Source: Anaeramoeba ignava BMAN (lineage: Eukaryota; Protista; Anaeramoebae). From it: a DNA stretch of 64,000 bases. The notes below the pieces were generated by a model. That model searched no databases and was not told the DNA's origin. It saw only the letters and a program-made list of their open reading frames with translations. The stretch is from the NCBI GenBank assembly GCA_028826165.1, contig JAPDFW010000125.1:434001-498000 (forward strand), written 5' to 3'. A program made the translations under genes and the position numbers. This document shows positions 5,815 through 60,752 of this stretch, piece after piece (position 1 is the stretch's first letter; each line of letters starts with the position of its first letter).

Positions 5815-8800
5815 ATGACAAATTTAGAAGAAGAAAAATCAGTAAATTTTTGTTTTCTTATTTAAAAAAAAAAAGAATCCAATTTAATATTTGAAATCTA
5901 AATTAAAAAATAAAAAAAAAACGTTGGAAAATTAATTTAAAAAAAAAAATTAAATAAAAAACTTTCTCTTTTTTAATTATAACAGTTTTCTGCTATTGAA
6001 ATTAAAAAAGATTTATATTTTGTTGGAGCATTAGATCCAAAACTTAAATTTTTTGATGTTGTTATTCCTTGTCCTTTTGGAACAACTTATAATGCATTTC
6101 TTTTAAAAGGATCACAAAAAATTGCACTTATTGAAACTGTTAAAAATAAAACTGAATTTTTTAAACAACTTAAAAACCGAATTGATTCAGTACTCTTAAA
6201 TGGAGAAAAAATTGATTATATTATTCATAATCACACTGAACCTGATCATTCAGGTAGTTTTTATCAATTTCTTCAAGAAAAATGTCCAAATGCTTCCGTT
6301 ATTGCAACAAAACCAGGAATTGAAAACTTAAAAAATTTAGTTCCTGATCATGCTGAAAAAATCAAATTTCTTGAAGCAGATGAAAGGCTTATTATTCGTC
6401 TTGGTGGTTATACTTTATCATTTATTAAAAGTCCTTTATGTAAAGATTTTTCAATAATCAAAATTAAAATTTAAATCAAAATCAAAATCATTTATAAAAT
6501 TAAAATCATTTATAAAATTAAAATCAAAATCAAAATCAAAATCAAAATTAAAATTAAATTTAAATTTAAATATAAATCAAAATCTAAATCAAAATCAAAA
6601 TCAAAATCGAAATAAAAATTTAAATCAAAATCAAAATTTAAATTTAAATCAAAATATAAATCAAAATCTAAATCAAAATAAAAGTCAAAATTAAAATAAA
6701 AATTTAAATCAAAATTTAAATTTAAATCAAAATCTAAATCAAAATTTAAATCAAAATCAAAATCAAAATCAAAATCAAAATCAAAATAAAAGTCAAAATT
6801 AAAATTTAAATCAAAATTAAAATATAAATCAAAATCTAAATCAAAATTAAAATCAAAATATAAATCAAAATCAAAATCAAAATCAAAATTAAAATCAAAA
6901 TTAAAATTTAAATCAAAATTAAAATATAAATCAAAATCAAAATCAAAATCAAAATCAAAATCTAAATCAAAATCAAAATATAAATCAAAATTTAAATCAA
7001 AATCAAAATCAAAATAAAAATTAAATAAAATCAAAATCAAAATCAAAATTAAAATCAAAATCAAAATCAAAATTAAAATCAAAATATAAATTTTATTCAC
7101 AGTACATTGGCCAGATACAATGTTTACTTATTGCAAAGAAATGGAAACAATTTTTACTTGCGATTTTTTTGGAGCTCATTATTGTTCTTCTAAAATTTTC
7201 AATGATCTTCTTGACAAAGAAGAAAAAGAAGAATTTAATAAAGAAGTAAAACATTATTTTGATTCAATTATGAGTCCATTTAAAAAAGCAGTAAAAGAAG
7301 GATTAAAAAACATATCATCAATTAATTTCAATACAATTTGTTGTGCACATGGACCAAGTAATTTTGATTATAAATAATCTTTTTATTTTTTGATTATTTA
7401 TTATTTTTAATTATTTTTTGATTATTTTTTGATTATTTATTTATTTTTTGATTATTTATTTATTTAATCAAAAATAGTAATCAGACAAGAAATTGAAAAT
7501 TATAAACGAAATTATTCGGAATGGAGTCAAGAAAAACCAAAAAAAGATAAAATTGTGATTGCTTACATTTCTTCATATGGATTTACAGAAAAAATGGGAG
7601 AAATAATAGAAAATGGGATCAAATCAATAAAAAATGGGAAAATTGAAGTGAAGAGGATGAATGCAGCAGAAAAAAGTGTTGAGGAGATCATGACAGAAAT
7701 TAGTGACAGTAAAGGATTACTACTTGGATCACCAACAGTAATGGGAGATGCATCACCTTTAATAATGAGAATAGCAAACGAACTGAATCCACTAATTTAT
7801 AACGGCGATCCAAAAAACAGAATGTTTGCAGGCTGCTTTGGTTCATACGGATGGAGCGGAGAAGCAACAGAGAATCTCTCGCAAAGACTTCTCCAAGTGC
7901 GAATGAGGATCCCACTTCCGCCGTTAAAAATCCATTTCAAAATGTCAAGTGAAGAAGAGCAAAACTGTTTTGAATGGGGAGCGTTATTTGCGGATTGTGT
8001 TTTGGAAAAGGAAAAGGCAGACACAGAATTCGCGTACAAATTTGGAAAGAAGCAAACATCAATAAGAAAGCTGTTAAATAGCGCTGAAATGGGGAGCGAT
8101 ATTTCAGTTATGAAGAGATATCGAGCGCCAAAACAAGATGGCAAAATAAAAAAGTGGAAATGTGTGATCTGCGGAGAAATCATTTACGACGTTGCTCCGC
8201 CTGCGTTCTGCCCAGCTTGCGGAGCTCCACAAGAGGTGTTTGTGCTTGTTGAGGAAATTGAGAACTATCAAAATTCAACGGACGAAAACAACGAAAATAA
8301 CAACAATGAAAATAATCAAGCAAATAAAATCAAGTTTGAAAACAGTTTGGAAAATATGCACCAAGAATACCAGAAAATCCAATCGCAAAAGGAATACGAG
8401 GGGCATATTGTTGTTATCGGAGCAAGCGCTGCTGGAGTTTCTGCGGTGAAGTCAATTAGGGAAGTTAACCGCCGAGCAAAAATTACTTTGATAAGCGCTG
8501 AGAATCATATTCCCTATTATAGACCCTCTCTTACAAAAACAATCCTTTCGGGACAGAAACCCCAAGACGATTCGTTCTATCTCACCTCGCACGAATGGCT
8601 ACTCGAAAATAACATTCAGTTCTTCCAAAACTTCGTTGTTACTAACATCAATTTGAAGAAAAAAGTTCTTGTTTTCGAACATAATAAACAAAACATCAAT
8701 TCGGACAAGAAAAAAAAGAATAAGAAACAGCAGATATCCTTTGACAGGATTATTCTTGCTGTTGGAAGCAACCAAAAACTACCGCAAGAAAAACGATCAT

Positions 8801-10658
8801 TTCTTCAAAAGCTCAAAAAACGTTCGGAATCGGAAAAAATCCTCAATGAAGCAAGATCGCAAAAAGTGAATGTTTTTGGATTTCGAACAATTGACGACTC
8901 ACTTCGCATCAAAGAATACATTGAAAAAAACGCAGTGGAAACGGTGATTATTTTTGGAAGTGGACCGTTAGGCATGGAGATATTTGATGGATTGCAAAAG
9001 TTAAACGTCAAGAAAATTAGTTTTGTGGAGTCAAGAAAGAGAATTCTGGCCTCAAGAGTCGACGACGAGGGAAGCGCTCTTCTCCAGAAAATTCTGAAGA
9101 GCAACGGCGCGCGTCTTTATCTTGGATATGAAATGCATCATATTTTGGATAACTCAAATAACAAAAAGGATCTCAAAGTGGGGAAAAAAGCAGATAATGT
9201 TGCTCACGGAATAGCTTTGGAAAAAGTGGATACCACGCATGAAGAAATCCTCAAGATTTACGGTGATTTGGTTATATTTGCAACAGGGGTCTATGCGGAG
9301 ACAACCCTAGCGAAAAAAATTGGACTGAAAATCCAACGCGGAATTATTGTTGATTCTTTAATGAATACTTCTGAAAAAGATGTTTTTGCTTGTGGTGATT
9401 GTGTTGAATACAAAGGATTCAATGAGAAATCATGGAGAAATGCCATCATAACTGGTAAAGTTGCGGGACTTGCCTCAGTCAATATTGAGTCCAGTTTCCA
9501 TTTGAATGTTTCTCCTTATTCCGTTACTGTTTGTGGTTTGATTGTTTATTGTATGGGTGATACTAACACTGATAATCAAGAAGTTATTTCTTCTCTTTCA
9601 AAAACAGAAGCTCATTATGTCAAGTTATTTTTTAAGGAAATTGAAGGAAGAACAGTTTTGTGCGGCGGGATAATTATAACTTTTGATTCTTCGATTGTTG
9701 TTACTTTTGGAAATTATCTTGAAGCACAAATGCAACTTCAACCTGCTGTAAAACGACTTATGTAAGGATTTTTTTTAAAAGAATCAAATTTAAAATTAAA
9801 ATCAAATTTAAAATTAAAATCAAAATTAAAATCAAAACAAAATTAAAATCAAAATTAAAATTAAAATTAAAATTAAAATCAAAATCAAAATCAGAATCAA
9901 ATTTAAAATCAAAATTAAAATCAAAATCAAAATCAAAATCAAAATCAAAATTAAATCAAAATAAAATCAAAATTAAATTTATATCAAAATTAAAATAAAA
10001 ATCAAAATTAAAATTAAATCAAAATCAAAATTAAATCAAAATCAAAATTAAAATTAAAATTAAAATTAAAATTAAATTCAAAATTAAAATAAAAATCAAA
10101 ATCAAAATCAAAATCAAAATTAAAATCAAAATTTAAATAAATAAAAACTAAAAAAGATCATACACAAGAGATAAACAAAAGAAAAAAAGAAAATCTAAAA
10201 CTTCTGTTTTAGCTAAATTTCAATTAGCCCAAGACTTAATTCCAGACTTAAACGCCTTATTTCATTTACAAGGAGGTTATGAAAAATTTCGAGAATTTTT
10301 AAAAGAACAATTATGTGAAGAAAATCTTGATTTTTGGACTGAAGCTGAAAATTATTCTAGAATTCCAAATGGTCATGAATCACAAATTGAAGTGGCAAAT
10401 CAAATATATAATCAATATGTCCGTTATGGAGCTGAAAAAGAAATAAATATTGATCATTTTTGTCGAGTTGAAGTTACTGAAAAAATTCGATATTCAGAAA
10501 TTTCTCAAGATCTTTTTAAAACTTCTCAACAACAAATAATGGATCTTCTTCAATCCGATCATTTTAAGAGATTTGTTAAATCACCAGCTGCAAAATTTTT
10601 AGTTTCAAGTATGAGAAATTTAAGAGAGCAACTTGAGGATGAATTAAAAGAAAATTAA
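5815..10658 (+). CDS. fprA: Multidomain flavodiiron protein (diiron MBL, flavodoxin, short rubredoxin, NADH:rubredoxin oxidoreductase) fused to a C-terminal RGS domain; exons 5815-5841, 5986-6439, 7103-7357, 7478-9761, 10157-10658
   Basis: Diiron ligands HTEPDH, LHWPD, CDFFG and AHGP are rebuilt across GT-AG introns. Flavodoxin: SSYGFT, GSPT, FGSYGWSGEA. Rubredoxin: CVIC-x12-CPAC. FAD/NADH motifs: GASAAG, GSGPLGME, TS..DVFACGD. Last exon reads FREFLKEQLCEENLDFW...EINID...SDHFKRF (RGS). All four introns keep phase. Confidence 0.88.
6440..7102 (+). repeat. Intron 2 of the FDP-RGS gene, filled with AAAATC/AAAATT/AAATTT hexamers
   Basis: GTAAAG...TTCACAG boundaries; hexamer variants throughout. 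Confidence 0.9.
9762..10156 (+). other. Intron 4 of the FDP-RGS gene (phase 2), linking the oxidoreductase and RGS exons
   Basis: Donor AT|GTAAGG; hexamer-repeat body like intron 2; ACTAA branch-like motif just before the AAG acceptor; splicing gives KRL-I-SYTRD in frame. Confidence 0.8.
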
Positions 10659-13718: not shown

Positions 13719-15898
13719 ATGTTTAAACGATTCAAAAGTAAACCAAAAAAAATTCAATTTTCTCAAATAGAAATTCCTTCAATTATTCTTATAACGACAA
13801 ATTTTATTAAAACAAATGGTAAAAAAAAATAAAAAAAATAAAAAAATAAAATTTTTTTCTAATTTATTGAAATTTAATGAAATTTATTAATTAAAAGCTC
13901 TTGATATTGAATATATTTTTCGAATTCCTGGAAGAATTTCTGATGTTGAAGAACTTAAAAATAAGTTGCTAAATTCTGATTCAAATTTAAACCTTTCAGA
14001 ATACAGTATCCATGTAGTTGGTTCTGTTTTAAAAGATTTTTTGAGATGTGAAGACCCATTAATACCTTTTAAACTTTATAAACCTTTTCTTCGATTACAA
14101 AGTAAATTTGCTTCTCCGAAAAAAAATGGAAAATTAAATCTAAATTTATAATTAAATTTATAATTAAATTTATAATTAAATTTATAATTAAAATTATAAT
14201 TAAATTTATAATTAAATTTATATCTAAATTTATAATTAAAATTATAATTAAATTTATAATTAAATTTATTAAATTTATAAAATTAAATTTAAATTTATAA
14301 TTAAATTTATAATTAAATTTATAATTAAAATTTATAATTAAATTTATAATTAAATTTATAATTAAAATTATAATTAAATTTATAATTAAATTTATAATTA
14401 AATTTATAATTAAATTTATAATTAAATTTATAATTAAAATTTAAATTTATAATTAAATTTATATCAAAATTTATAATTAAATTTATATCAAAAATTTTAT
14501 CAAAAATTTATAATTAAATTTATATCTAAAAAATTAAATTTATATCTAAAATTATATCTAAATTTATAATTAAATTTATAATTAAATTTTATAATTAAAT
14601 TTATAATATTTATAATTAAATTTATAATTAAATTTATAATTAAATAAATTTATAATTAAATTTATAATTAAATTTATATCTAAATTTATATCAAAATTAT
14701 ATCAAAAATTTATCTAAATTTATATCAAAATTTATATCAAAATTTTATAATTAAAATTTATATCAAAATTTATAATTAAATTTATATCAAAATTTATAAT
14801 TAAATTTATATCAAAATTTATATTAAATTTATATCAAAATTAAATTATATTATAAATTAAAAATTTATAATTAAAATTTATAAAAATTTAAATTTTTATA
14901 ATCAAATTTATAATTATAATTTAATTAAATTTATAATTAAATTCAAATTTATAATTAAATTTATTAAATTTATATCAAAATTTATATCTAAAAATTTATA
15001 TCTAAAATTATATCAAAATTTATAATTAAATTTATATCAAAATCTAAAATTATATCAAAATTTATAATTAAATTTATAACTAAATTTATAATTAAAATTA
15101 TATCAAAATTTATAATTAAATTTATAATTAAATTTATATCAAAATTTATATCAAAATTTATAATTAAATTTATATCAAAATTTATATCAAAATTTATATC
15201 AAAATTTATATCAAAATTTATATCAAAATTTATATCAAAATTTATATCAAAATTTATATCAAAATTTATATCAAAATTTATATCAAAATTTTATATTTAT
15301 ATCAAAAATTTCAAAAATATATCAAAATTTATATCAAAATTTATATCCAAATTTATATTATATCGAAATTTATAATTAAATAGCAAAAAATGAACAAAAA
15401 GACCAAAAAATTGCAAAATTATTACTTTTACTTCCTGAAAGAAATCAAGTTATTCTTCAATATTTAATGCAATTTCTTTGGGAAATAGCATCACATTCAA
15501 AAGAAAACAAAATGGATGCATCAAATTTATCAATTGTATTTGGACCCAATATTATTCGAAAGAAAAAAACAAATCCAAAAAAAGAAATGAAAGATTTCGA
15601 CAAAATCAAAAATTTAACAACATTTTTAATTGAGAATGAAAAAAAAATATTTGAGAATGTGGAACAATTTAGAGGAAAAAAAGGTTGTTTACTTCCAAAT
15701 GATGGCTCAATTTATTCAACAAGCGATCCATCAAAATTAACACATTCTTTTCCAAAAACTGTTTGTTCTTTACCTACACATTTTGAAAAAAATAACGCAA
15801 TTAATTTAGATTTCGATTTGGATTTAGATTTACCTAAAAAACAAGCAATTTCAATTGTAACAGGTTTTCATGAACCAATTCAAGTTCAGAATAATTGA
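13719..15898 (+). CDS. RhoGAP-domain protein; exons 13719-13818, 13898-14101, 15384-15898
   Basis: IFRIPG (arginine finger), [36 protein letters not shown]; both introns are phase 1 and in frame. Confidence 0.92.
14102..15383 (+). repeat. 1.28 kb RhoGAP intron made of 12-mers TTTATAATTAAA / TTTATATCAAAA
   Basis: GT...TAG boundaries; tandem 12-mers. Confidence 0.9.
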
Positions 15899-25802: not shown

Positions 25803-28800
25803 TTAATTGAGATCTTTGGCATTTTTAATAGTTTCCCAAATTTTATCCTCTTTTTGTTTTAAAAATTCTTTTCTTTTCCTTTCAGTTTCAATTACATTTT
25901 TACGAAGTTCTTGAATTTTTTTATTTGCTGCAATAGTAAGAAGAAATAAGTATTTTTTTCTGATTTTTTCAATTTCAAAAGGTTCACCAGTAATTGGATG
26001 ATTTTCCAAATAAGAAACTGCCATTGAAATTTCTTTTTCTGAAATATCAGGTTTTTTTTCAGGAATGTGCCCAATCATTTCCTTTTGTTGTTTCAAGAGA
26101 TTCATTAAGTAATTTGCAAAAACTCTAAGAATTGGATTGTTTGTTTGATGATCAATAAGCATCATTGCTGAATAAGATTCATCAATTGATTTTTCATCAT
26201 CAAGTCTGAAAATTGTTGAAACTGAACCTCCTGTTGTTCCTAATAATTTCTTAACTGTTGAAGTTGCTCCTGAAAAAACCGTCATGAAAAATTTAATAAA
26301 ATCATAAATTGAAAATGCTGTTCGATTTGTAATTTGTTCTTTATCAACGAAATATTTGTTCATGATCTTTTGAATAAGAATCCCAAAAATGATTTGATAA
26401 ACAAACACAATAGCAAGGAATATAATAATAACAGTGATCACTTTAACAACAAAATCCTTGGAAACAAACCAATAAAGTGCTGGAATCAAAAAAAGAATGA
26501 TGAAAACAATTATCCATACAAAAAGAAATGAGACTAATCCTAACCAAATCTGTAAATTTGTATAAGAAGTAACCAAAACTGTTTTGGCTTGATCAAATTC
26601 ATTAAAAGGTTTTTTCCCTTGTCTTAAAAGCATAATTCTTTTTCGATACAAATTGAAAATTGATCTCCAAAGCAAAAGAAGAATTATAAATGCAATAAAT
26701 GCTGATATTCCTGCAACAACTGAAATGGCATTCATAATTTTATTTACTTGATATCTTGAAAATCGATACATAAAATTTTTGAATGAATTCTCAAGAGGTT
26801 TTTGATCAATAGGACAATAATCTGAAAATTGATTAATTAATTGGATTGCATAAACAGAAACTGTTTCTGGATAATCACTTATATCTGGTCTATCATTAAA
26901 GCAACTACCTTGTTGAAGATCTCCTATGATTTGTTGTCGATATAACTGAATAGATAAACAAGCACTTCGAAAAAGTTTAGTACAAAATAATAACAATAAT
27001 GCAACTAAAATAACCCATAACCAAAATGAAGCAAGTAATCTTTGTGGATAATAAAAATCAAAATAGGTTTCATATTCTTTATGTGGATTTGGTTTTTCTT
27101 TGAATTTTAATTTGATTTTCTTGTATAATTTTTTAAATTGTTTGACAATCCATTTCCAACTTCTTTTCAATTTACTTAGATTTTTTTCTTCTTTTTCTTC
27201 TTTTTCTTCTTCTTCTTTTTCTTCTTTTTCATCATTTTGAATTTGAGAAAATGTACCTAATATATTTTGAGTTCCATATCTTCTTGTTGATCTTCTGAGA
27301 ATGAGTCTAATTTCTGTTTCTGTTAATTGGAATCTGTTTTTCTCTTCTGATTTTTTCTCTGGTTTTTCATTTTGATTTTCATTTTGATTTTCATTTTGAT
27401 TTTCATTTTCATTTTCATTTTCATTTTCATTTTCATTTTCATTTTCAGTTTCATTTTGTGAATCAGTTTCAAGTTCAATTTCATTAAGATTCTGATCCTT
27501 TTCCTTTTTTTTCTCTTCTTTTAAATCATCTTCACTTGTTTCTGAAATGGCAACATTTTTTCCAAGAGTTTTTTCAATTTCCCTCACTTTTAAACTTCGA
27601 ACTCCTCCTATTGGAAGTAATCTTTTGAAAAGAGATGTATAACTTGACATTCTTTCATGAACAAAAACATATCTTTCAATCCAAATGGGAAATTTTGGGA
27701 TAATTCGTGATAATAAAAGAATGAATAAAAGCAAAAGAGCAAAAGAAACAAGAATTCCTTCAAAAAATGATAAAGAGATATATTGTCTTGATTCCACTTT
27801 TTTGGCTTTTGGAATTAATTGAGGAAGAAAACACATTAAAATAATCATTAATGCAAGTGCAACAACAAATGTGACAATATTATGTTTTTTGAGAGAATTC
27901 AGGAAGAAAGGAACTGCAAGAGATAAACAAACAACCCAGAACAGAACTGATTGTTTGAGAGAATCAACAGCTTTTGTTAGTACAACACTATCAGGAGAAG
28001 TTATTAAAAATGTATGATAATCAGATTGTATTCCTAAAATTGAGAAAGAAACTTCTCCTTTCACTTTGTTTTCCTTATTGGTTTGAATTAAACAATCTGA
28101 AGTTCCTGAAATTGAATCAAATTGAATATTTTGGAAATAAGCAAATCCTTCAGAACTAATTGAAATGGAACTTTCAGGAATTGAAACATTGCAGCATTTT
28201 GTAATTATTGTTATTGGGAAATTGATTCCTTCTTGATAACCTTCATTGAAATTAACTGTAATTGTAGCTGAAAATTTATCTCCAATTTGTATATTATCCC
28301 GAAAATCATACACTTGAGAAGTTACACTATCGATTGGATTTTGTAAATAAAAAGGATCACTTGTCATAGTGATATTATTATAAGAAAATTTGATTGTGTA
28401 ATAACCAGAATTCCCAGAAACCATCTTAAGATTAAAAAGAGCGACTCCATTTTTATCAGTTATTGCTGATGTTGTTTCTGGATCTAGAACACCATTTCCT
28501 GCATTTTCCACAATTTCTGCTGATAAAATTTTCCCTTTAACAACATCTGAATAAGCAAAGAGTTGAACCACAACTGATCCCATTACCAATGAACCATCTA
28601 CATTTAATGTTTCTGTAGGAAAAAGGAAAGGAGATCCAATTTGTGATCCATTGATAGGTTGTGATTTAATAAAAATATGAGTTGGAAATCTTATTAACTC
28701 GATATAAAATAACCCGATAAATTCATAATCCACTTCAAAAATCATTGTAATAAATCCTTGATCTCCATATCCTGATGAATTCAAAGAAAACTGAGCAATT

Positions 28801-31800
28801 CCATAATCATTTGTAATTTCATATCCTTGATATTTCCAATTATCTATACTATCATTCCAAGATAAAAGATTCACATATTTGTTTACCATTGGTTGTAATG
28901 TATAGTAATCATAAACCATAATTGTTGGAGAAGTTGGAAAATCTTGATTGATAAACACTTTTTCTGGAAAATTAAAATATTGTAACAAAGGAAATTCTTC
29001 AGTCAAATTAAAATATACAATTTCGTTTCCATAATAACCTTCTTGCCAAACATAAAAACGAGCATATGTTTCTTGTGTATTTCGAATATATTGAAAAGAT
29101 AAATTCCAAGTTACTGTTCCATTTTCATCTGAAGGAGCAACACTTCTCACAACCGCATCATCTACATCATGAGTGTGAACAAAATCAAAAGGCCAAGTCA
29201 GTATAGTATCATCAATCCAAAAAAAACCATAATAACCTTGAACTGGATCCCCAAGATCATCAGTAATTCTCATTGTTGGTTGATGGGTTACTCTATTATA
29301 TCCTGAAGTGAATGATTCTGAAGTATCCCAAGTTACATTTAAATGTAGACTTTGATTAGAGAATTTTAAATTTATAAAAACTTCACTTGTTGCTGGAATT
29401 CCATTCACAAAAATAACTAAATCAAATGGTTCATGTTGAAAATAGCTAATATAATTTGTTTGGTCGTTAATCACAAAATCATCTAAAATTAATTCATCTA
29501 AAAAATCCAAAAAAAAAATTAATAAGAAGAAAAAAATTAAATTAAATTAAATTAAATTAAATTACTATTTCCATCTAAAGTGTAGTTTGATTCAAATAGA
29601 ACATTTGTTAAATTTCGAGCTCGATAACTTGAATTTAATCCAAAAATATCAAAATAAGGATCCCATGCATTCAAAGCAGCTACATGAACTGTTACATCTG
29701 TTCCTGTCAGATTATTTCCAGATACTTTTACTCGAATGGATTCATTTCCAAAAGTTTGGTGTGGAATAAAATAATTATCAACATCAGGAGAATAACTAAT
29801 CTCAACTTCTTCTACATCATTTGCCAATACAAATCGAAAATAATTCCAACATTCAAAATGATTCTGATCAGGGATTCCATATCTTGAAGCAAGTAAATGA
29901 AATCCCCTGTACATTTCCTTTCCAAATATTCTTGTTGAAATTGTTCCAGATCCATTTGAAATTTGCCAATATCCTTCTTCAGGAATAATTAAATATCCAA
30001 GAGCAACATCTATAGTTCCAACAAAAGCAGAAACATAAAAATCCTCTTCGATAATATCTCCATAGAAATCTTGAATAACAATATCCAAGTTCAATATTTC
30101 TCCTGATCTAATCGTTTCGTTCCAATTCAGAATTACAATTTGATTTGGACTTGTTGAGACAAAATTGTTGGTTACATTAACAGCGAGTAAGTCTGAAATA
30201 TAATCATCAACCCACACATCATAAATTTGTTCTGACAAACCTTCAGCAAGTCCCATTTCTGCAAAGTCTAGATAAATTAAAGCAAATCCATTTTGATCAG
30301 TTTGAAAATAGGAAGGATTGAAGGTAAAATTTGAGATTTCGAAATTGATGAATTTATTAGCGATTCCTTTCCCTAATTCATCTTGAACTTGAATAACAGG
30401 CCAAGAATCTGCATTCATCTGTGAATTGTCGAGGATCGTTAGATTTGTCATGCCATTTGTCCAAACAATTTTCGAAATGGATGAATTAACTTGAATATCA
30501 TCAGTTACAACAGAAAATCCATCACAAATGAATTTGATTTGAGATTCACAAAATGAATATGTAGAACCGGAAATCGAAAACTTGAGATCTGTGAAAACGG
30601 CACTAAAAAAAAAAAATTTAAAATCAATTCCAAAACAAAAAACAAAGATAAAAATGATTTTTTTGGATTTTTCTTACTTTCCTGATTCATCTGTAAAAAC
30701 CAAAGAGTTATAAAGTGATTTTGAATTAATAAAGGGTTCTTGATCTTCTGAAATATCAGTGTTACAATCTTTTGAAAGTTTAGCAAAAACAGGTTTATTT
30801 GAAATTGGAAAATCATTTTCATCTTTAACAGAAATAATCCATGGTGTTGAAAACTTTTCACCTTCTTTAACAGAAAAAGATCCATTTTGAGAAATTTCAA
30901 AACTTTTCACTATTTTCAAAATTTGAATAAGAAGAAAAACAAAACAAGTGAACAAAAAACAAAGAAAGAAAATTGAATTAACAAATCAAACCTTTTGTTG
31001 TGAAATTAAGTTCAAAATATCCTTCAACATTATTTCCCAAAGGATCTTCATAAGATAATTGAACTCCTTGAGCAAATGATGTAAATATCATTTGTGTTGA
31101 AGTTGATCCAAGAAATTTGATAATGTTATTCGCCAATCCATTTTCATCAAAAGAATAATCAACTAATTCATAAACAGCTATTTCAAAAAATTAAAATCAA
31201 AATTAAAATCAAAATCAAAATTAAAATTTATTTTTACCATAAGCTTCATATTCTGCATAAACTAAAGAACGATTTCCTGGAACAAATGAAAATCTTACTC
31301 CTTCTAATTCTGAATCCGAAAATTCCTCTTTGTTACTAATATTCATAACCAATAAAATCTCTTCTCCATAATCAAAAGTTCCTTTGTTTATTGAATCATT
31401 ATTGAGTAGATAAAAATTTTGGACTAAAATAAAAGAAAAAGAAAAAGAAAAAGAAAAATAAGTATTTGATTGTGAAAATAAGAAGGATATTTCTTACTTT
31501 TTGATTTCATTGTAACTGGAAATTCAATTTCTGTGGCTTTTGAGTCATATCCCAAATTAATTTTCCGATCTATTAGAAATTGAAAAAGAAAGAATTTTAA
31601 TAAGTGAAAAAAGAATATTTATTTAAATTTATTATTCTTACTTGGACCTGATAAATCTAATTCATTTTTCCAATTACAATTTGAAGAAAAAGTTAATTTC
31701 ACTGTATTACTTGAACCTGAAATGATTGAAATATCTGAAAACTTCACAATTCCATCTTGATCTGAATATTGAGTTAAACCTCCAAATAATTGAGGATCTG

Positions 31801-51629: not shown

Positions 51630-54600
51630 ATGAATGAAGAAGAAAAAACATTAACAACAATAACAACAAGAATTTTTAATCAATTACCAATTAAAAGATT
51701 TGAACAAACACAATCACAATTAATATTTTTAGCAGAAGAATATATTGAAATTTATTTTTCAATGGAAATTGAAATTTTAGTTTCTCTTTCAATTACAAGA
51801 TTAGAATCTGTTTTACGTGTTTTATTAGGTTTACTTCGTGATATTTCTCAAAAAGTTGTTGATAAAAATGATGAAAGATTTAGTTCTGTTGAAAGGTCAA
51901 TTTTAATTGTTTTTGAATGTATGATTCGTTGTTATTCACATTCTTATAAAATGGTAAATATAATATTTTAATTTTAATTATAATTTTAATTTTAATTTTA
52001 ATTTTAATTTTAATTTTAATTTTAATTTTAATTTTAATTTTAAATTTAATTTTAATTTTAATTTTAATTTTAATTTTAATTTTAATTTTTAATTTTAATT
52101 TTAATTTTAATTTTAATTTTAATTTTAATTTTAATTTTAATTTTAATTTTAATTTTAATTTTAATTTTAATTTTAATTTAAATTTTAATTTTAATTTTAA
52201 TTTTAATTTTAATTTTAATTTTTAATTTTAATTTTAATTTTAATTTTAATTTTAATTTTAATTTTAATTTTAATTTTAATTTTAATTTTAATTTTAATTT
52301 TTAATTTTAATTTTAATTTTAATTTTAATTTTAATTTTAATTTTAATTTTAATAATTTTAATTTTAATTTTAATTTTAATTTTAATTTTAATTTTAATTT
52401 TAATTTTAATTTTAATTTTAATTTTAATTTTAATTTTAATTTTAATTTTAATTTTAATTTTAATTTTAATTTTAATTTTGATTTTTAATTTTAAAATTTT
52501 TAAATAATAGACTGAAGAAGATCTTGAAAATTATGAAATTGATAATAAAAGAAAACTTATACCTGATACTTTAGCTGAACAATTAATTACATTATTTATC
52601 CAAATTTGTCAAGAAAAAGATCATGATGATTATTCAGGAATGTTTGAAGAATATTTTGGTAAACTTATTTCAAGAATTTCACATTTAAATTATGAAGTTG
52701 CTTTTCAACATGTAGTCAAAGTACTTGAATCTATTAAAAAATCAAAAGAAAATACAGAAGTTAAGGAATTAGATATTTTAAAATATTTAGATTATAATTC
52801 AAAAAGATTATCTCAAATGTTTCAAGAACTTGCTAAATATTTACATTTTTTCCAAAAATCACAAATGGAACCAATTTCAATATCATTAAGAGAAGGTAAT
52901 TATAATTTTAATTTTAATTTTAATTTTAAATTTAATTTTAATTTTAATTTTAATTTTAATTTTAATTTTAATTTTAATTTTAATTTTAATTTTAATTTTA
53001 ATTTTAATTTTAATTTTAATTTTAATTTTAATTTTAATTTTAATTTTAATTTTAATTTTAATTTTAATTTTAATTTTAATTTTTAATTTTAATTTTAATT
53101 TTAATTTTAATTTTAATTTTAATTTTAATTTTAATTTTAATTATAATTTTAATTTTAATTTTAATTTTAATTTTAATTTTAATTTTAATTTTAATTTTAA
53201 TTTTAATTTTATAAATAAATTTTTAATTTAAAAAGCAATTTGGAATTGGATTAATACTAATCCATCTGAATTTACAAAATTATCACAATCTGAGAAAACT
53301 ATGGATGGAAATCCAGATATTTTATTTGATCATTTTAAAAGATGGGGAGGTTTAATGAAGAAAAAAAGTTATATTTTTTGGCCAATACAAACAATGTTAT
53401 TAATATTATGTCCAGATATTTTATTAGGAATTGCAAAAGCAAAAAAAGAATATTTATCATCACCAAGAGGAGAATTTCTTGAAACACTTAAAAAAACATA
53501 TAGAAATAAAGGAGAAGCACCTGATATGGCAGCTTTATGTTTTGTTGATTTATGTAGAGCATCAACTTATGTATCAAAAGAAGATATTGCAGCATTAAGA
53601 TATATTGTTCCAACAGTTTTACCTGATTTAAAAGTAAAATATAAATATTATTAAAATATTAAAATATAAATATTAAAATATTAAAATATAAATATTATTA
53701 AAATATAAATATTATTAAAAATATAAATATCATTAAAATATAAATATTATTAAAATATAAATATTATTAAAATATTAATATTTAAATATAAAAAAATATT
53801 TTAAATTTATAGAAAAAATTATACTCAAAATCAAAACCCTTTCGTGATAATAACGTTCTTGTCCAATTATTAGTTTCTTCATTTAGAATTAATCCAAGAG
53901 ATCTTTTTGATGTTTGTTTGGAAAAAGATGCACCTCCTTTATTTAGATCAATTCTTTTAAAAGCATTACTTGTAATAGCTAAAGAAGAACCTTTACCTTG
54001 GAATCCTCATTTATCTGCTGCTTATTCTATATCAACAAAAGTTAAGGATATTTTCGCAGAATATCTTTCAAACTTAAAAAGTTTGCAAATTAATCAAAGT
54101 GGAGAAGCAAGAACAACTATGATTTCAACTTTGGTTGATTCTTCAAATATTAAGAAAAAAGAAAGAGAAAAATTTGAAGCTGCAAAAACTCATATTGAAG
54201 TTGTTAATGAAACATTGAAATTATTTTCTCAAGATCCTGAATTCGCTTTATGTCCAAATAATACTACTCCAGATGAAATTACAAATGAAATTAGTGAATT
54301 ATTTATGGATATAACTTCTTGTCTTGAAAGTTCATTCAGTAATGAAATAACTCACTCAGCTACACTTGCTCTAAAAGAATTATTTAAACCTAAAATTATG
54401 GAGAAATGGTGCCCTAAAGATGTTATGAATTCATTTTATGATATATCATCAACTGTATTGTTTGGAATCAGTCATCTAATTATTGAATCAAAAGAAATTT
54501 CACAAGAAAAAATTCAAACACTCCTTGATTTAATCCAAGATCTTTTGAAAAAAAGAAACGAATTTTTAATTTCTCACAAAAGGGAAAGAGAAGGATATCA

Positions 54601-57600
54601 AAAAGAAGTTAAGAAAGATATTGTGCAACATCACAATAGAACAAACACAAAAATTGAGCAAGCTTTGCTTATTCTTTTATGCAATTCAGATCCTGTTGTT
54701 TGTGCTCAAGCAGCTCAATGTTTTGATTCACTTTGTGAAGAAACAAAGATGATTGGTGATTTAAACAATCCAGAAAATACAGTTGCAGTTTCATACAATT
54801 ATTACAAAAGATTAGTTCAAGTTGGACAATTAACAACAGGCAAAATTGCTCAACAAAAAGGAATTCGTTCTTTATTCCGTAGAATTGATGTTGCTACAAA
54901 TGGAAATAAATTGGTTTGGTCTAGGATCTATGAGAGATGGAATGATCAAACCAAAATTATCAAATATTCCTCCAAAATTCCTGATGCAATTGAAACTGAT
55001 CCACAAACTAAAAAAACAAAACAAAAATCAAAATCTGGAGATAAAAGCTTTTCAAGAGAATTTTCAGATTCTGAATTGAATAGAATTAAAATTGAATGGA
55101 GTAATTATACAGGATTTTTATGCAGTTTATCAGGTGTTGGAAAGAGTATTCCAGAAACATCAGGTCCAACAACAGTTCAAAAATCAGATGAAAAAACTAT
55201 ATTAGGTCCTTTTATTCAGAAACTATTAGCTTTAATTGTCTCTCCTATTGATTTTATTAAAGAAACTATTGTTCCAATAATTTCCACTTTATCTCCATCT
55301 GTTTATTCTCAATTTTTTGATCAAGTTCGTGATAAAATTGCAGAAAATTTCTCTCAAGATGGACATGTTTCTTCAACAAATGAACGTTCAACTTTGTTTT
55401 ATGATCAATTAATTTCCATTATTAGAAATATTCTCGAACAACCACTTACTTTGGATGATCTTTCTGAAATTGATTTTGAAAAACTTATTCTGCAAATTGT
55501 AACTTATCTTTCTCATATTTTTGTTGATATTGATTCACTTAGAATTAAATGCAAATTATGCCAATTAATTGAAATTATGATGAATAAAAGAGATTATCTT
55601 TTGTTCAGACACGAAATTCAATTTAGAAATGAATTAGTAGAAGCAATTATGGAATGGTTTTCCGTTTATCAAAAAGATTCAACATCTCCAAATTCACAAC
55701 AAAATACCAACGAAAATTTAACACCATTAACACAATCTCAATCAACAAACACAAATCAAGCAAAGGATTCTCTTGATTCATACACAAATTTAAACAGAAT
55801 GAAAAGGGAATTGGATATAACAACAATGAAAGCTATTGAGAAGTTACTTGATGGATTAATTCTCCAGAAACCATGGAAAGGAGAACACACAAAACAACCA
55901 ACAGCAGAACAAGTTGTTGAACAACGCTCAGAAATTTTCTTGCAATATTTCACTTTTTTCTCATCAATGCTTCAAAGATTGCAAAAGGATAAAGAATCAA
56001 GTGAAGATGCCAAAAAATTATCTCAACACACAATCATGTCTCTTTCCAATATGCTTCATGCCAATGTAAATGTAGGATTGAAGCATGCTTTACCAATGGG
56101 ATATATAAATGATATTGAATCAAGATCAGCTTTTCTTGATGTTTTAACAAATATTTTAAAGCAAGGAACAGAATTTGCAAGTTTAAAAGAAACAGCACAA
56201 AACAAATATAATGAATTGATAAATTTATTAGTTTCTGATGATTTATTTGTTACAAAAGCAGTTTGCGCAATTACTCAAGTTACAGACACAGATTTAATTG
56301 CTAAATTACTTGTTCATATTCACGAAGGAGAATCCAAAGTTATGAATTTACTTCGATGGGCTATTCAGGATGAAGTCAAAAACACTCCTCAAGATCAACC
56401 TCAAATGCTTTTCAGAAGAAACTCACCAGCAAGTAAAATGCTTGGTGTTTATTCACAAATGATTGGAGGAGCATATCTACAGAAGGTTTTGGAACATTTA
56501 ACCAAAAGTTTATCGAATGAAATTACTATCAATAAGAAAACATTTGAAATCAATCCTTCTATGGTTAAAGAAGGTGAATCCAAAGAAGTTAATCTTGAAA
56601 ATCTTGTCAATTTTACAACACAATTTCTTGATAAAATTATCGATTCCATTTCATATGTGCCTAGAAAATTACTTTTAATATCTCCACTATTTGCAAATAT
56701 ATGTTTCTCAAAGATTTCCAAAAGATGTTCGAATTTCTGTTTCAGGATTTTTCTTTCTTAGATTTTTATGTCCAGCAATCATTTCACCAGAAAATCACAA
56801 TATAATTAGTGAGAGAATTTTACCTGAAGTAAGAAGAGCATTAATTCTTATTGCCAAAACAATACAAAATCTTGCAAATGGAGTTATGTTTGGTAAAAAA
56901 GAGGAATTTATGTCTCCATTGAATACCTTTATTGAACAAAACCAGAATCGATTTGATAAATTTATTGAAGATCTTTTGAAAAAAGGAAAAGAAACAGAAA
57001 ATCAAATAAATCAGGAAAAAACACCTAAAACAAAAACACAAACAGGAGATCTTTCTGAAAATCTTGAAACAGAGCAAGTTCAAATTACAGATGAACAACT
57101 TACAGAAGATCTTGAATCTCTTCATCATTTCTTAAACACAAACATGGAGAAATTATCTGTTCATTTTAAAAGACAACAAGATCAAAAAAATGTTAAAATT
57201 GGAGAAAAATTCCTTTCTCTTTTAAATGAACTTGGGAAACCACCAGAAAAAAAGAACAAAAAAGAAGCTTTAGGAGTTGTCAGAGAAACTAAAACAATCA
57301 CTGAAGATTCTCATTCAGAAAACACAAAGAAATACAAGAAATTTAAAGATTTTATGAAAAGAATGGAAAGTTCAGACACTTCAAGATTGGAAAATATATT
57401 TTTCCAAAAAGGAAAAACCAAAACAGGAGAACTTGTGTTTTATTTTATTACAAGAAGAACAGAAAATTCTGAAGATAAAGGTGCAATTATTTATTATATT
57501 CTCAAAACCTTTGAAGAATTTTTTTCAAAAAGAATTCAACCTTTTGTTGTTGTAATTGATTGCTCACAATTTTCATCATCTCATGAAATACCCAAAACAT

Positions 57601-60600
57601 GGGTTTCTCAATTCTTTTCCATTTTCCCAAATTCATGGACAGATAATTTCAAAGAAGCTTATATGATTTATCCATCATCTGGATTGAAAAAATACACCAA
57701 GAAAATTGGAAAGATAATTTCACATGGATTTGGAAGTAAAGTGAAAATTATGGATTCAATATCAAAATTGTTTTCAATTATTCCTGAAAGTGAAAAGGAA
57801 TTACCTCAAGAAACTGTTGAGCTTGAAACAACAATCAAATTTAGATTCCCGCAAATAATACAAGTTTCTCAATTTAAACAACGAGAAGCAACATTTAATA
57901 TTTCCAATCAATATTTGCAAATTGTTCAATCTAAGGAATCAATTCTCAACACACAAACTAATTTGTTTGATTTAATACATGTTATGGATATTCAAGAAAT
58001 GCAACTTTCTGATGAAATTCCTGATCAATTTATGCTCAAAATGGTGGTTAATTCTGATCAAAAAAATTTATCATATCGAAGTAATTCTCGACAAGAAATT
58101 ATTCAAGCTATTCAAACAACCAAAAACAGAATTGAGCATCAACAAAAACTAGGAACAAATAAATCAGGTATGATTTCTGCAGAGGTGAGACCTGCAGATG
58201 TTCCTGGATCTCTTCTAAACATTGCTTTGCTAAATTTAGGAAATGAATTTGAAACTCTAAGAAAATCTGCATATAATCTTGTGACTTCATTGTGTAGAAG
58301 TTTCAATTATTCTCTTCAATCTCAATTACTGGAAACTGAAGGATTATGTGTTCCACAATCACATACTTCATTTGTAATTGATTTGAGTAAAAAATTGGCA
58401 CAAAGTGAGAAGCATCTTACATTGGAATTTCTTAGAGAATGTTTGAAATATTTCAGACAGGCAAGTTTACATGCAAAACATCTTTGTTTGGAATATATGG
58501 CACCTTGGATTCCCAATTTGAAAGATTATGTTTGCAAATATTCATCAATAAATAATAGTGATGATTCAAATAATAATAAAAAAATTCAAAAAGATAACAA
58601 CAATATTGATAAAAAAGTTAATACTGAAGAAAGTAATGAATCAAAAAGAGCATTTGCAAAGGCAGTTATTGTTGATTTTCTTGAAATGACTATCAGAGAA
58701 AAAACTTTATATCCAGCAGTTTTAATTCATGTTTGGAGAACATTTGCTGGTGTTCATGATCTTTTAGATATTGTTATTGATGTTTTTATTGAGCAAAGTT
58801 CAAAATATGGTGTTGATACACCAAGTTCAGATATGATTGCACAAATTACAGTAACTTTGGCTTCAATGGATTCCAAATATGTTTCAATTAAACTATGTGA
58901 TACTGTTTTACAAAGAATATCATCAGTTTCAAAATCACTTCAAAATCAAGAAAAAACAAAAATTGAAGATTATGAAAAATGGGATGAAGTTTTGATTATG
59001 ACAAGATTCTTACTTTATCTTAGTTTTGAGAATCTCATTTCGTTAAGAAACACTCTTCCTGAATTATTCCATATTATTCTTATGATTTATTCTTCTGATT
59101 CTTTGTTTATGAGAACTGCATTACTTTCACTTGTTATCAATATAATTCATTCATTAGCAACAAAGTTACCACCTCAAAATGAACAAAAACAATTAGATCT
59201 TCGCGCAATTTTGAATGAAGTTACTCAACCTAGATTTAGAGTTCTTTTTATGGGATCTGGAGGTAAAAAATCTGATATAATTTCTGAAGGATTTAGTGCC
59301 ATTAGTTCTGGTTTAACTGGAATCAATACAACAGGAATTTCTGGAAAAAATTTATCAAATATTGTGAAAAAATCAAACAAAGAAAACTCAAATGAAAATG
59401 AACAAAATAAAAGTGAAGATTCAAAAAATAATCAAGATGAACAACAAGAAGATAAAACAAAAATCAGTGGGATTGAACCAGTTAAAAAGAATATAACAAG
59501 AAAACCTTTACCTAAATTACCGAAAAAATACTACAAAATGGAGAAAATCACAATAAGTAGTACAGATCAAGTTTCACATCTTTTCCGAGAAGTTATTGAA
59601 TGTTATCAAAACGAAAAACAAGGAAAAGATTGGCATAAAAAATGGCTTGAATTAACAACATTTTCCGCATTTCAAACATCACTAATTCAAGCACGAGCAA
59701 TGGTAGTTTTAGGAAATTTATCTGAACCACCGATTGCCAATTCATTTTTTGCAAGAATATTTAGTTACATGCAACCGTTAATATGCAAAGAAGAACTTCT
59801 TGAAAGAGAAATTGATATTTTAACATCAATTATTATTTGTTTGACTCATTTATACCCATTATTAGAAGGATCGAATATGAAATTCAACATGTTTTGGGTT
59901 ACAACTTGTTTGGTTCAATATGGCGAAACTGAATTATTTCCTTATTTGATTAAAATGCTTCATGTTATTCTTGAAAATCTTGACAAATCTGGAGTTTTTG
60001 ATAACAATGATATTGATGAAGTTTTCATGGATTCAAGAAATAAAAATCCACAATTGGATCGTTTACTTTCCGATTTCGAAGAACATATGGGAATGATATT
60101 TAGAATGGGATTTCCTGTTGCATTAACATCTGTTTTTCTTCCAGCAAGAAAAATGCCAACTTTAAAAAATGCATTGATTGGATTGTTCCAAACAATGGTT
60201 GATATTTCGTGCAAGACTGGTATCACAGCAAACAAAGCTGCTTATATTGTCTCTTTAGGAAGTTGTTTAACTACAAAAGAAATTCTTGATCTTCGCGCAA
60301 GACTTGGTAATTATATCGATTGGGAAGGTGAATTGGAACAATTATTTTTTAATCCAGTTATGCAACAAGAAAAAAATACTGCAAATTTACAAGTTTATTT
60401 ATTAACTTCTTTATTAATTCAATCTGATTATGATCAAGAACAACTTTTCATTCTTGATATTTTGAATTATTGTGTTGATGTTTTTCCTCAAGTTTTTCCT
60501 ACTGTTTATCATCTTCTATCCCTTAAATTATTCCATATTTTATCTCATACTCAAAATCCTCATGTTCAAAAATCTGTTTTGAAATTAACAAATTTTATGC

Positions 60601-60752
60601 TTTCTGATAAATCTAGAAGAATTCCTGGTCAATTAGAAATTTTGGGTTTTAAAAATTTGAATAAATTTATAAATTCTCCTATTGATAAAGCTGATAAAGC
60701 TGATCGAGGACAAATTATATCAGAAGTTCTTGAAGTAGTTACCAAAGTTTAA
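51630..60752 (+). CDS. NF1: Neurofibromin (NF1/Ira-type RasGAP with Sec14-PH module); introns at about 51954-52511, 52896-53235 and 53633-53812; one +1 frameshift near 56680
   Basis: WPIQTMLLILCPD, EWSNYTGFLCSLSG, arginine finger LFRRNS, FLRFLCPAIISPE, AKTIQNLAN, Sec14 FFQKGKTKTGELVFYFI, RPADVPGSLLNIALLNLG, HLTLEFL, CLEYMAPWIPNL are all neurofibromin hallmarks. Confidence 0.93.
51954..53235 (+). repeat. (TTTTAA)n-filled introns 1 and 2 of NF1 (exon 52512-52895 lies between them)
   Basis: Read directly. Confidence 0.88.

Follow-up and report, generated by a model that had tools for sequence, protein, structure and literature searches.

In a window of 64,000 nucleotides from the Anaeramoeba ignava BMAN genome (contig JAPDFW010000125.1, positions 434,001 to 498,000; all positions below are those of the window), the forward strand between 5815 and 10658 carries a gene in which a flavodiiron protein (FDP) with the modules of class F is continued at its C-terminal end by an RGS domain, the type of domain that acts as GTPase-activating protein (GAP) on G-alpha subunits. 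A first-pass annotation, made from the sequence of the window, had joined the open reading frames of this locus through four phase-compatible GT-AG introns, and this model is correct. The five exons and four GT-AG introns (phases 0, 1, 1 and 2) give a single frame of 1173 amino acids with one terminal stop, which is identical to the deposited A. ignava protein KAJ5067679.1 (P0001), and the search with exon 4 gave a 100% match. The deposited protein is named only as 'diflavin flavoprotein A 2-related'. The features of the gene are given below, in which P0002 is the second A. ignava gene of the same architecture.

5815..5841, forward strand: exon 1, start codon (as in KAJ5067679.1), 9 codons, acidic N-terminus
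5842..5985, forward strand: intron 1, GT-AG, 144 nt, phase 0, with a matching intron site in P0002
5986..6439, forward strand: exon 2, N-terminal part of the diiron metallo-beta-lactamase (MBL) domain, ligands H92, E94, D96 and H97 (6232-6249)
within 5986..6439 (exon 2), forward strand: second-sphere residue K62
6440..7102, forward strand: intron 2, GT-AG, 663 nt, phase 1, directly 5' of HWPD, at a site common to 7/7 fusion genes of both species
7103..7357, forward strand: exon 3, remainder of the diiron domain, ligands H162, D181 and H243, conserved Y212
7358..7477, forward strand: intron 3, GT-AG, 120 nt, phase 1
7478..9761, forward strand: exon 4, flavodoxin, rubredoxin and reductase
7558..7980, forward strand: flavodoxin (FMN) domain in exon 4, SSYGFT loop with Y279, GSPT, FGSYGWSGE
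8155..8241, forward strand: short-spaced rubredoxin, C474/C477 and C490/C493
8404..9761, forward strand: NAD(P)H:rubredoxin oxidoreductase, FAD and NADH domains and C-terminal domain
9762..10156, forward strand: intron 4, GT-AG, 395 nt, phase 2, at the boundary of reductase and RGS
10157..10658, forward strand: exon 5, linker, RGS, acidic C-terminal helix, stop codon
10173..10199, forward strand: polybasic linker, KQKKKRKSK at amino acid 1013
10248..10586, forward strand: RGS domain, Pfam match and contact residues

The motifs and the domain order from MBL to RGS that had been named in the first-pass annotation were all recovered by a motif check and by Pfam searches, which were made exon by exon. 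HNHTEPDH lies at amino acids 90-97, LHWPD at 161, CDFFG at 180, AHGP at 242 and the two CxxC motifs at 474 and 490; in exon 5 the linker motif at 1013 is followed by EEN at 1061, EINID at 1102 and DHFKRF at 1141. The Pfam matches are an ODP-type MBL domain (exons 2-3), Flavodoxin_1, RUBY_RBDX and Pyr_redox_2 (exon 4) and RGS (exon 5). No obvious hydrogenosomal presequence was seen by eye at the N-terminus of the protein. GC3, the G+C content of third codon positions, is 0.3-0.55 within the long exons of many genes, that of 7478-9761 included, and about 0.1 in short exons; it is also near 0.1 in the actin genes and in the FDP genes of contig C64 described below, and an effect of position or of expression may be the cause. 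The idea that exon 4 is a foreign insert, taken from its high GC3, was rejected, since the long exons of many A. ignava genes are alike in this respect.

The same architecture (diiron MBL, flavodoxin, rubredoxin, NADH reductase, basic linker and RGS) was found in seven paralogs, two in A. ignava and five in Anaeramoeba flamelloides, where the copies occur in both sequenced strains. P0002 has introns at the same four places. P0002 shares intron 4, and none of the five fusion genes of A. flamelloides has it. This intron may be left over from exon shuffling or may have been gained later in A. ignava. In each of those five genes a single stop-free exon of about 1060-1080 codons runs from HWPD through the whole RGS domain, and because the coding DNA is continuous there, the junction of reductase and RGS is no artefact of gene prediction. 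The fusion is real, conserved and specific to the genus. For the present gene alone one may still suppose that splicing does not join the RGS exon to that of the reductase, as read-through of the donor meets an immediate stop and would leave a plausible plain class F protein. This is very improbable, given that exon 5 has no start codon of its own, that P0002 has the same intron and that coding DNA runs through the junction without a break in five genes of the orthologous clade. As the first-pass annotation had stated, no in-frame Met precedes the RGS domain in exon 5, where the frame is open for just two codons upstream.

Transcription of one A. flamelloides fusion gene is shown by the transcriptome protein P0062, which matches the fusion paralog P0005 over amino acids 198-710 only and so ends short of the junction. 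A word-based search found no junction-spanning transcript fragments, and such a search is insensitive, as a similar one for the RGS region missed known paralogs. Database searches gave these seven Anaeramoeba genes and no RGS-bearing FDP outside the genus, among the best 150 matches of 1.84 billion representatives and 58 word-search matches; the other long class F relatives that were scanned (Eutreptiella, Aduncisulcus, Dysnectes, Barthelona, Mastigella) are without RGS. One A. flamelloides paralog is annotated as two adjacent proteins (P0069 and P0215, KAJ34 accessions) and is whole in the other strain (P0216), for which a frameshift or an assembly error is possible.

Beside the fusions A. 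ignava has three plain class F genes, and A. flamelloides has one or more clusters of them. Those of A. ignava are located as follows.

G000:C64:276200-282700 (L026) and C75:111400-116500 (L027): plain class F FDP genes of A. ignava (three in total)

The pair on C64 is a near-identical intronless tandem with an actin-like GC3 of 0.09. The actin-like codon bias is present in these two tandem genes and not in the long fusion exons, which we count as weak evidence. A further divergent FDP-like MBL exon lies at G000:C62:260996-261340 (E 6e-8) and possibly belongs to a class A gene. The database proteins P0166 and P0206 have an FDP diiron domain fused to domains of pyruvate:ferredoxin oxidoreductase type.

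The origin of the fusion was traced in a tree of 78 class F-type proteins, which was built with FastTree only, with the RGS part removed and a midpoint root. The seven fusion FDP parts form one clade (support 100) nested in a clade (94) of Anaeramoeba class F proteins, whose next neighbours are Mastigella and Eutreptiella proteins (99), with fornicate and barthelonid proteins joining after these; the named clostridial and Trichomonas sequences are placed elsewhere. The fusion RGS parts are likewise a single clade (99/99), outside which 13 further RGS domains of A. ignava fall, and their subgroups match those of the FDP tree. The simplest reading of these trees is that a class F gene already resident was duplicated and one copy was fused, once, before A. 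ignava and A. flamelloides split, and that separate duplications followed. The enzyme had been proposed to be derived from bacteria. A prokaryotic ultimate origin of the class F gene is likely, but the immediate parent is the resident Anaeramoeba gene, which groups with protist class F proteins, and a direct acquisition from clostridia finds no support in the tree. Separate phylogenies of the two halves, which had been suggested as a check, gave one clade for each with matching subgroups. For the two closest paralog pairs a simple counting method gave a dN/dS of about 0.04-0.15 for each domain, also for RGS, at a dS near 1, from which both halves are judged to be under purifying selection.

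The motifs of a class F chain are intact in the enzyme part. The diiron ligands H92, E94, D96, H97, H162, D181 and H243, which correspond to the set H-x-E-x-D-H, H, D, H of FDPs (PMC13133992), are present in 7/7 fusions, as are the FMN, FAD and NADH motifs and the four rubredoxin Cys. The flavodoxin domain (PF00258, E 4.5e-9) is C-terminal to the MBL domain, and both class F features follow it, a rubredoxin with two CxxC motifs and then an NAD(P)H:rubredoxin oxidoreductase. The best PDB sequence matches and the top Foldseek matches of this part are FDPs, with FAD/NADH reductases also among the closest solved relatives, and the ESM Atlas returned just look-alikes of the C-terminal part of the reductase, below 0.9. 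On the ground of family knowledge the protein likely has NADH:O2 reductase activity as a dimer. The earlier proposal had named both O2 and NO as substrates, of which O2 is the likelier by analogy, because the NADH-driven class F enzyme of Trichomonas vaginalis, which reduces O2 (kcat of FDPF3 466 per s), has less than 2% of that activity with NO (PMC9364112). K62 and Y279 of this copy, as also of P0002, stand at the positions of Entamoeba histolytica Lys53 and Tyr271, a pair typical of O2 reductases, though in the E. coli FDP the pair is insufficient for O2 selectivity (PMC13133992).

Several features of the enzyme part are peculiar to the fusions. Twelve positions are invariant in them with residues that hardly occur in 14 plain class F proteins. 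Most of these are within the reductase (S562, Q678, E683, K693, L701, P742, R772 and S897), where the changes include a Pro of the NADH-binding loop and a basic insert that is conserved at about amino acids 680-712. An extra basic helix at about 428-449 lies ahead of the rubredoxin, and in total three conserved Lys/Arg-rich segments are specific to the fusions. The NADH-loop motif GxGPLG is found in 7/7 fusions and in 0/14 plain proteins, a second altered loop reads GASAAG, and in five of the five A. flamelloides copies His replaces the Tyr271 equivalent. It may be argued from the altered loops and from this Tyr-to-His change that the enzyme part is a pseudo-enzyme or a slow sensor, whose slow turnover leaves only binding of NAD(P)H or of O2/NO. 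We consider this improbable, as the ligands and electron-relay residues are all intact, GASAAG also occurs in a plain Eutreptiella class F protein and the present copy retains both the Lys and the Tyr.

The RGS part is a canonical one (PF00615, E 5.3e-24, exon 5), all-helical in the predicted model, and its matches among solved structures are RGS5, RGS16 and RGS4 with E-values from 6e-18 to 1e-15. Residues E1062, N1063, N1104, D1141 and R1145 align with E87, N88, N128, D163 and R167 of RGS4 (RGS4 numbering), which we take to be the equivalent positions. All five contacts to G-alpha of the RGS4 type are thereby present in this copy, as expected from the EEN, EINID and DHFKRF motifs on which GAP function had been proposed; the equivalents of E87, N128 and D163 are invariant in 7/7 fusions and those of N88 and R167 are kept in 6/7. 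The presumed targets are numerous, with 98 G-alpha exon matches at more than 40 places in the A. ignava genome beside 71 RGS matches, and switch I (RIPTTG) has its Thr-Gly pair intact in 10 of 12 loci examined; the Gly is the residue at which the change G183S blocks RGS binding (PMC12505447). GAP activity of the RGS part is therefore likely from its contact residues and from the intact switch I. The view that a class F architecture and a canonical RGS are combined in one protein is supported, and the G-alpha family of the genome is very large. The GPCR (G-protein-coupled receptor) profiles PF05462 and PF00003 have no match in the A. ignava genome, which does not prove the absence of such receptors. 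No seven transmembrane helices precede the RGS domain of the fusion; all upstream domains are soluble redox folds.

For the coupling of the two halves the main reading, to which we give a probability of roughly 0.40, is that the redox state of the enzyme gates the GAP activity. The enzyme part would work like T. vaginalis FDPF, as a head-to-tail dimer that reduces O2 to water, with electrons passing from NADH through FAD, the rubredoxin Fe and FMN to the diiron site, as its intact motifs suggest. Bulk scavenging would be left to the plain class F paralogs and the fused copies would serve as a gauge of O2 and NADH, their electron chain being reduced in anoxia and oxidised on entry of O2. The redox state of the chain may then alter the access or the activity of the RGS domain, probably via the adjoining, remodelled reductase domain. 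As for the output, the RGS part would bind G-alpha at its switch regions and speed GTP hydrolysis, which its contact residues and switch I make probable, and its state would set the GTP level of G-alpha subunits that are probably self-activating. Self-activating G-alpha subunits that engage RGS proteins are known from Trichomonas and Naegleria (PMC9283941), so that GAP control is a natural point of input. The sensing half also has a parallel, in that the diiron MBL fold of ODP has been recruited as a sensor of O2 or iron in prokaryotic signalling (PMC7319448). The retention of plain paralogs together with the fusion-specific changes near the RGS favours a regulatory role. The wider proposal, a receptor-free O2 sensor for heterotrimeric G proteins in which a cycling NADH:O2 reductase gates its attached GAP by redox state, is put forward tentatively, at less than even odds.

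A number of observations weigh against such gating. In the AlphaFold2 models each domain is well folded (mean pLDDT 82-83) and a helix crosses the junction of exons 4 and 5, its end being the polybasic linker, yet a low-confidence hinge follows this helix at amino acids 1021-1032. The pTM is 0.52 for the full length and 0.68 for reductase plus RGS, with no confident rigid docking of the RGS domain; the alignment over the RGS part was shallow (11 rows). No redox-sensitive Cys is conserved in the fusion RGS parts; C1060 is found in this copy only, and a redox role for it was rejected as it is unconserved among the paralogs. The catalytic chain is as strongly conserved as the RGS part, as for a working enzyme. 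Moreover, a C-terminal RGS occurs on several unrelated A. ignava proteins (LRR-ankyrin-Ras-RGS for example), and with RGS so often added at C-termini in this genome, the fusion alone gives no proof of allostery.

The last point and the linker, the part with the lowest conservation and of variable length among the fusions, suit the notion that the two domains are independent passengers within one polypeptide, kept for the sake of co-expression or through history. We hold this to be unlikely, because the fusion has been kept through five duplications and in two divergent species, with the annotation of P0069/P0215 in one strain as the sole split, and the enzyme part carries the fusion-specific invariant residues. 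The A. ignava proteins with C-terminal RGS include a long-exon family with the order ankyrin repeats, Ras/Roc-like GTPase and RGS, several members having N-terminal leucine-rich repeats (LRRs), at G000:C115:339030, C2:768796, C24:303964, C64:193396 and C57:266310 (L033-L036, L039); this order ties a small-GTPase domain to a G-alpha GAP domain.

The conserved catalytic chain and the flexible tether of the models are in turn what one expects if the protein is an oxygen scavenger directed by G-alpha. Here the RGS domain would be an address or effector tag, and active G-alpha together with basic patches would bring the NADH oxidase to a membrane (symbiosome, phagosome or leading edge), or would switch its turnover, for local removal of O2 or regeneration of NAD+, with GAP activity ending the signal. 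The three fusion-specific Lys/Arg-rich segments agree with this, and the sulfate-reducing symbionts of the host, with their O2-sensitive enzymes, sit in a membrane compartment (PMC11550330). On the other side, scavenging is already covered by the plain class F paralogs. GAP-type RGS domains hold the transition state of G-alpha only briefly, and for this reason RGS is a poor anchor. Recruitment of a scavenger is a possible explanation, and redox-gated GAP activity is placed only slightly ahead of it.

The protein was compared with the known systems nearest to it. The class F FDPs (T. vaginalis TvFDPF1-3, PMC9364112; the Clostridioides difficile multidomain FDP, PMC6033852) have the same four-module chain and ligands at about 33-36% identity, to which the Anaeramoeba fusion adds a linker and RGS of about 165 amino acids, the basic inserts and the altered NADH loop. 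Their chain ends after the reductase with no signalling domain, and the fusion departs from that class definition by its extra RGS in seven paralogs; nine FDP classes are cited in 10.1101/2024.04.03.587993. By its modules the fusion should function as class F proteins do, in an architecture that is new. With RGS4, RGS5 and RGS16 it shares the RGS box and the G-alpha contacts, whereas its N-terminal partner is a redox enzyme of four cofactors and theirs is a targeting or scaffold domain. The seven-transmembrane (7TM) RGS proteins that act with self-activating G-alpha (Arabidopsis RGS1, Trichomonas, Naegleria; PMC9283941) likewise have an input module N-terminal to the RGS, and they include Trichomonas, a lineage related to Anaeramoeba; in the fusion a soluble redox enzyme takes the place of the seven-helix membrane domain, and the input would be O2 or NADH and not an outside ligand. 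ODP of prokaryotic chemotaxis (PMC7319448) has the same diiron MBL fold, linked or fused to signalling domains as a sensor of O2 or iron, but it is an isolated diiron domain with prokaryotic signalling proteins, while the fusion keeps the entire chain from NADH to O2 and has a eukaryotic GAP as output.

The first-pass annotation knew of no described FDP-RGS fusion, and no precedent was found in the searchable literature: the words 'flavodiiron' and 'RGS' come together in no paper of it, subscription papers being outside its scope. The main text of the Anaeramoeba genome paper (PMC11550330) is without FDP or RGS, and the available portion of its supplements has no relevant passage; a preprint on A. 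pumila names FDP only as a hydrogenosomal detoxifying enzyme. The flavodiiron-RGS fusion is thus apparently undescribed, although built from two known modules.

Other genes of the window were also recorded. A Rho/Rac-like GTPase (PF00071) lies just downstream, from 11525 onward, and a RhoGAP-like exon was noted near 13966 by eye only. A gene with neurofibromin-like RasGAP and CRAL-TRIO is at 53918-60752, its RasGAP being split between two overlapping frames near 56700 by a short intron or a frameshift. On the reverse strand, 25803-29510 encodes a protein of 1235 amino acids with weak matches to RBP_receptor (STRA6-like, E 1.5e-10) and ZIP. The A. ignava genome also has about 100 open frames of the actin family, most of them without introns and many standing in tandem arrays.

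To our knowledge, oxygen sensing in anaerobic protists is largely unknown, and the FDPs that we know of are detoxifying enzymes and not signalling proteins. A sensor role of the fusion is plausible from its sequence, and the fusion offers a concrete soluble protein on which the relation of O2/NADH state to G-protein signalling can be tested. If the main reading is true, an anaerobic eukaryote would turn O2 straight into a G-alpha signal, for movement away from O2, for encystment or for control of the symbiosome. If the RGS domain only recruits the enzyme, the protein would be an oxygen sink steered by G proteins in a cell that houses sulfate-reducing symbionts. The classification of FDPs also gains an architecture that is now hidden under the name 'diflavin flavoprotein A 2-related'.

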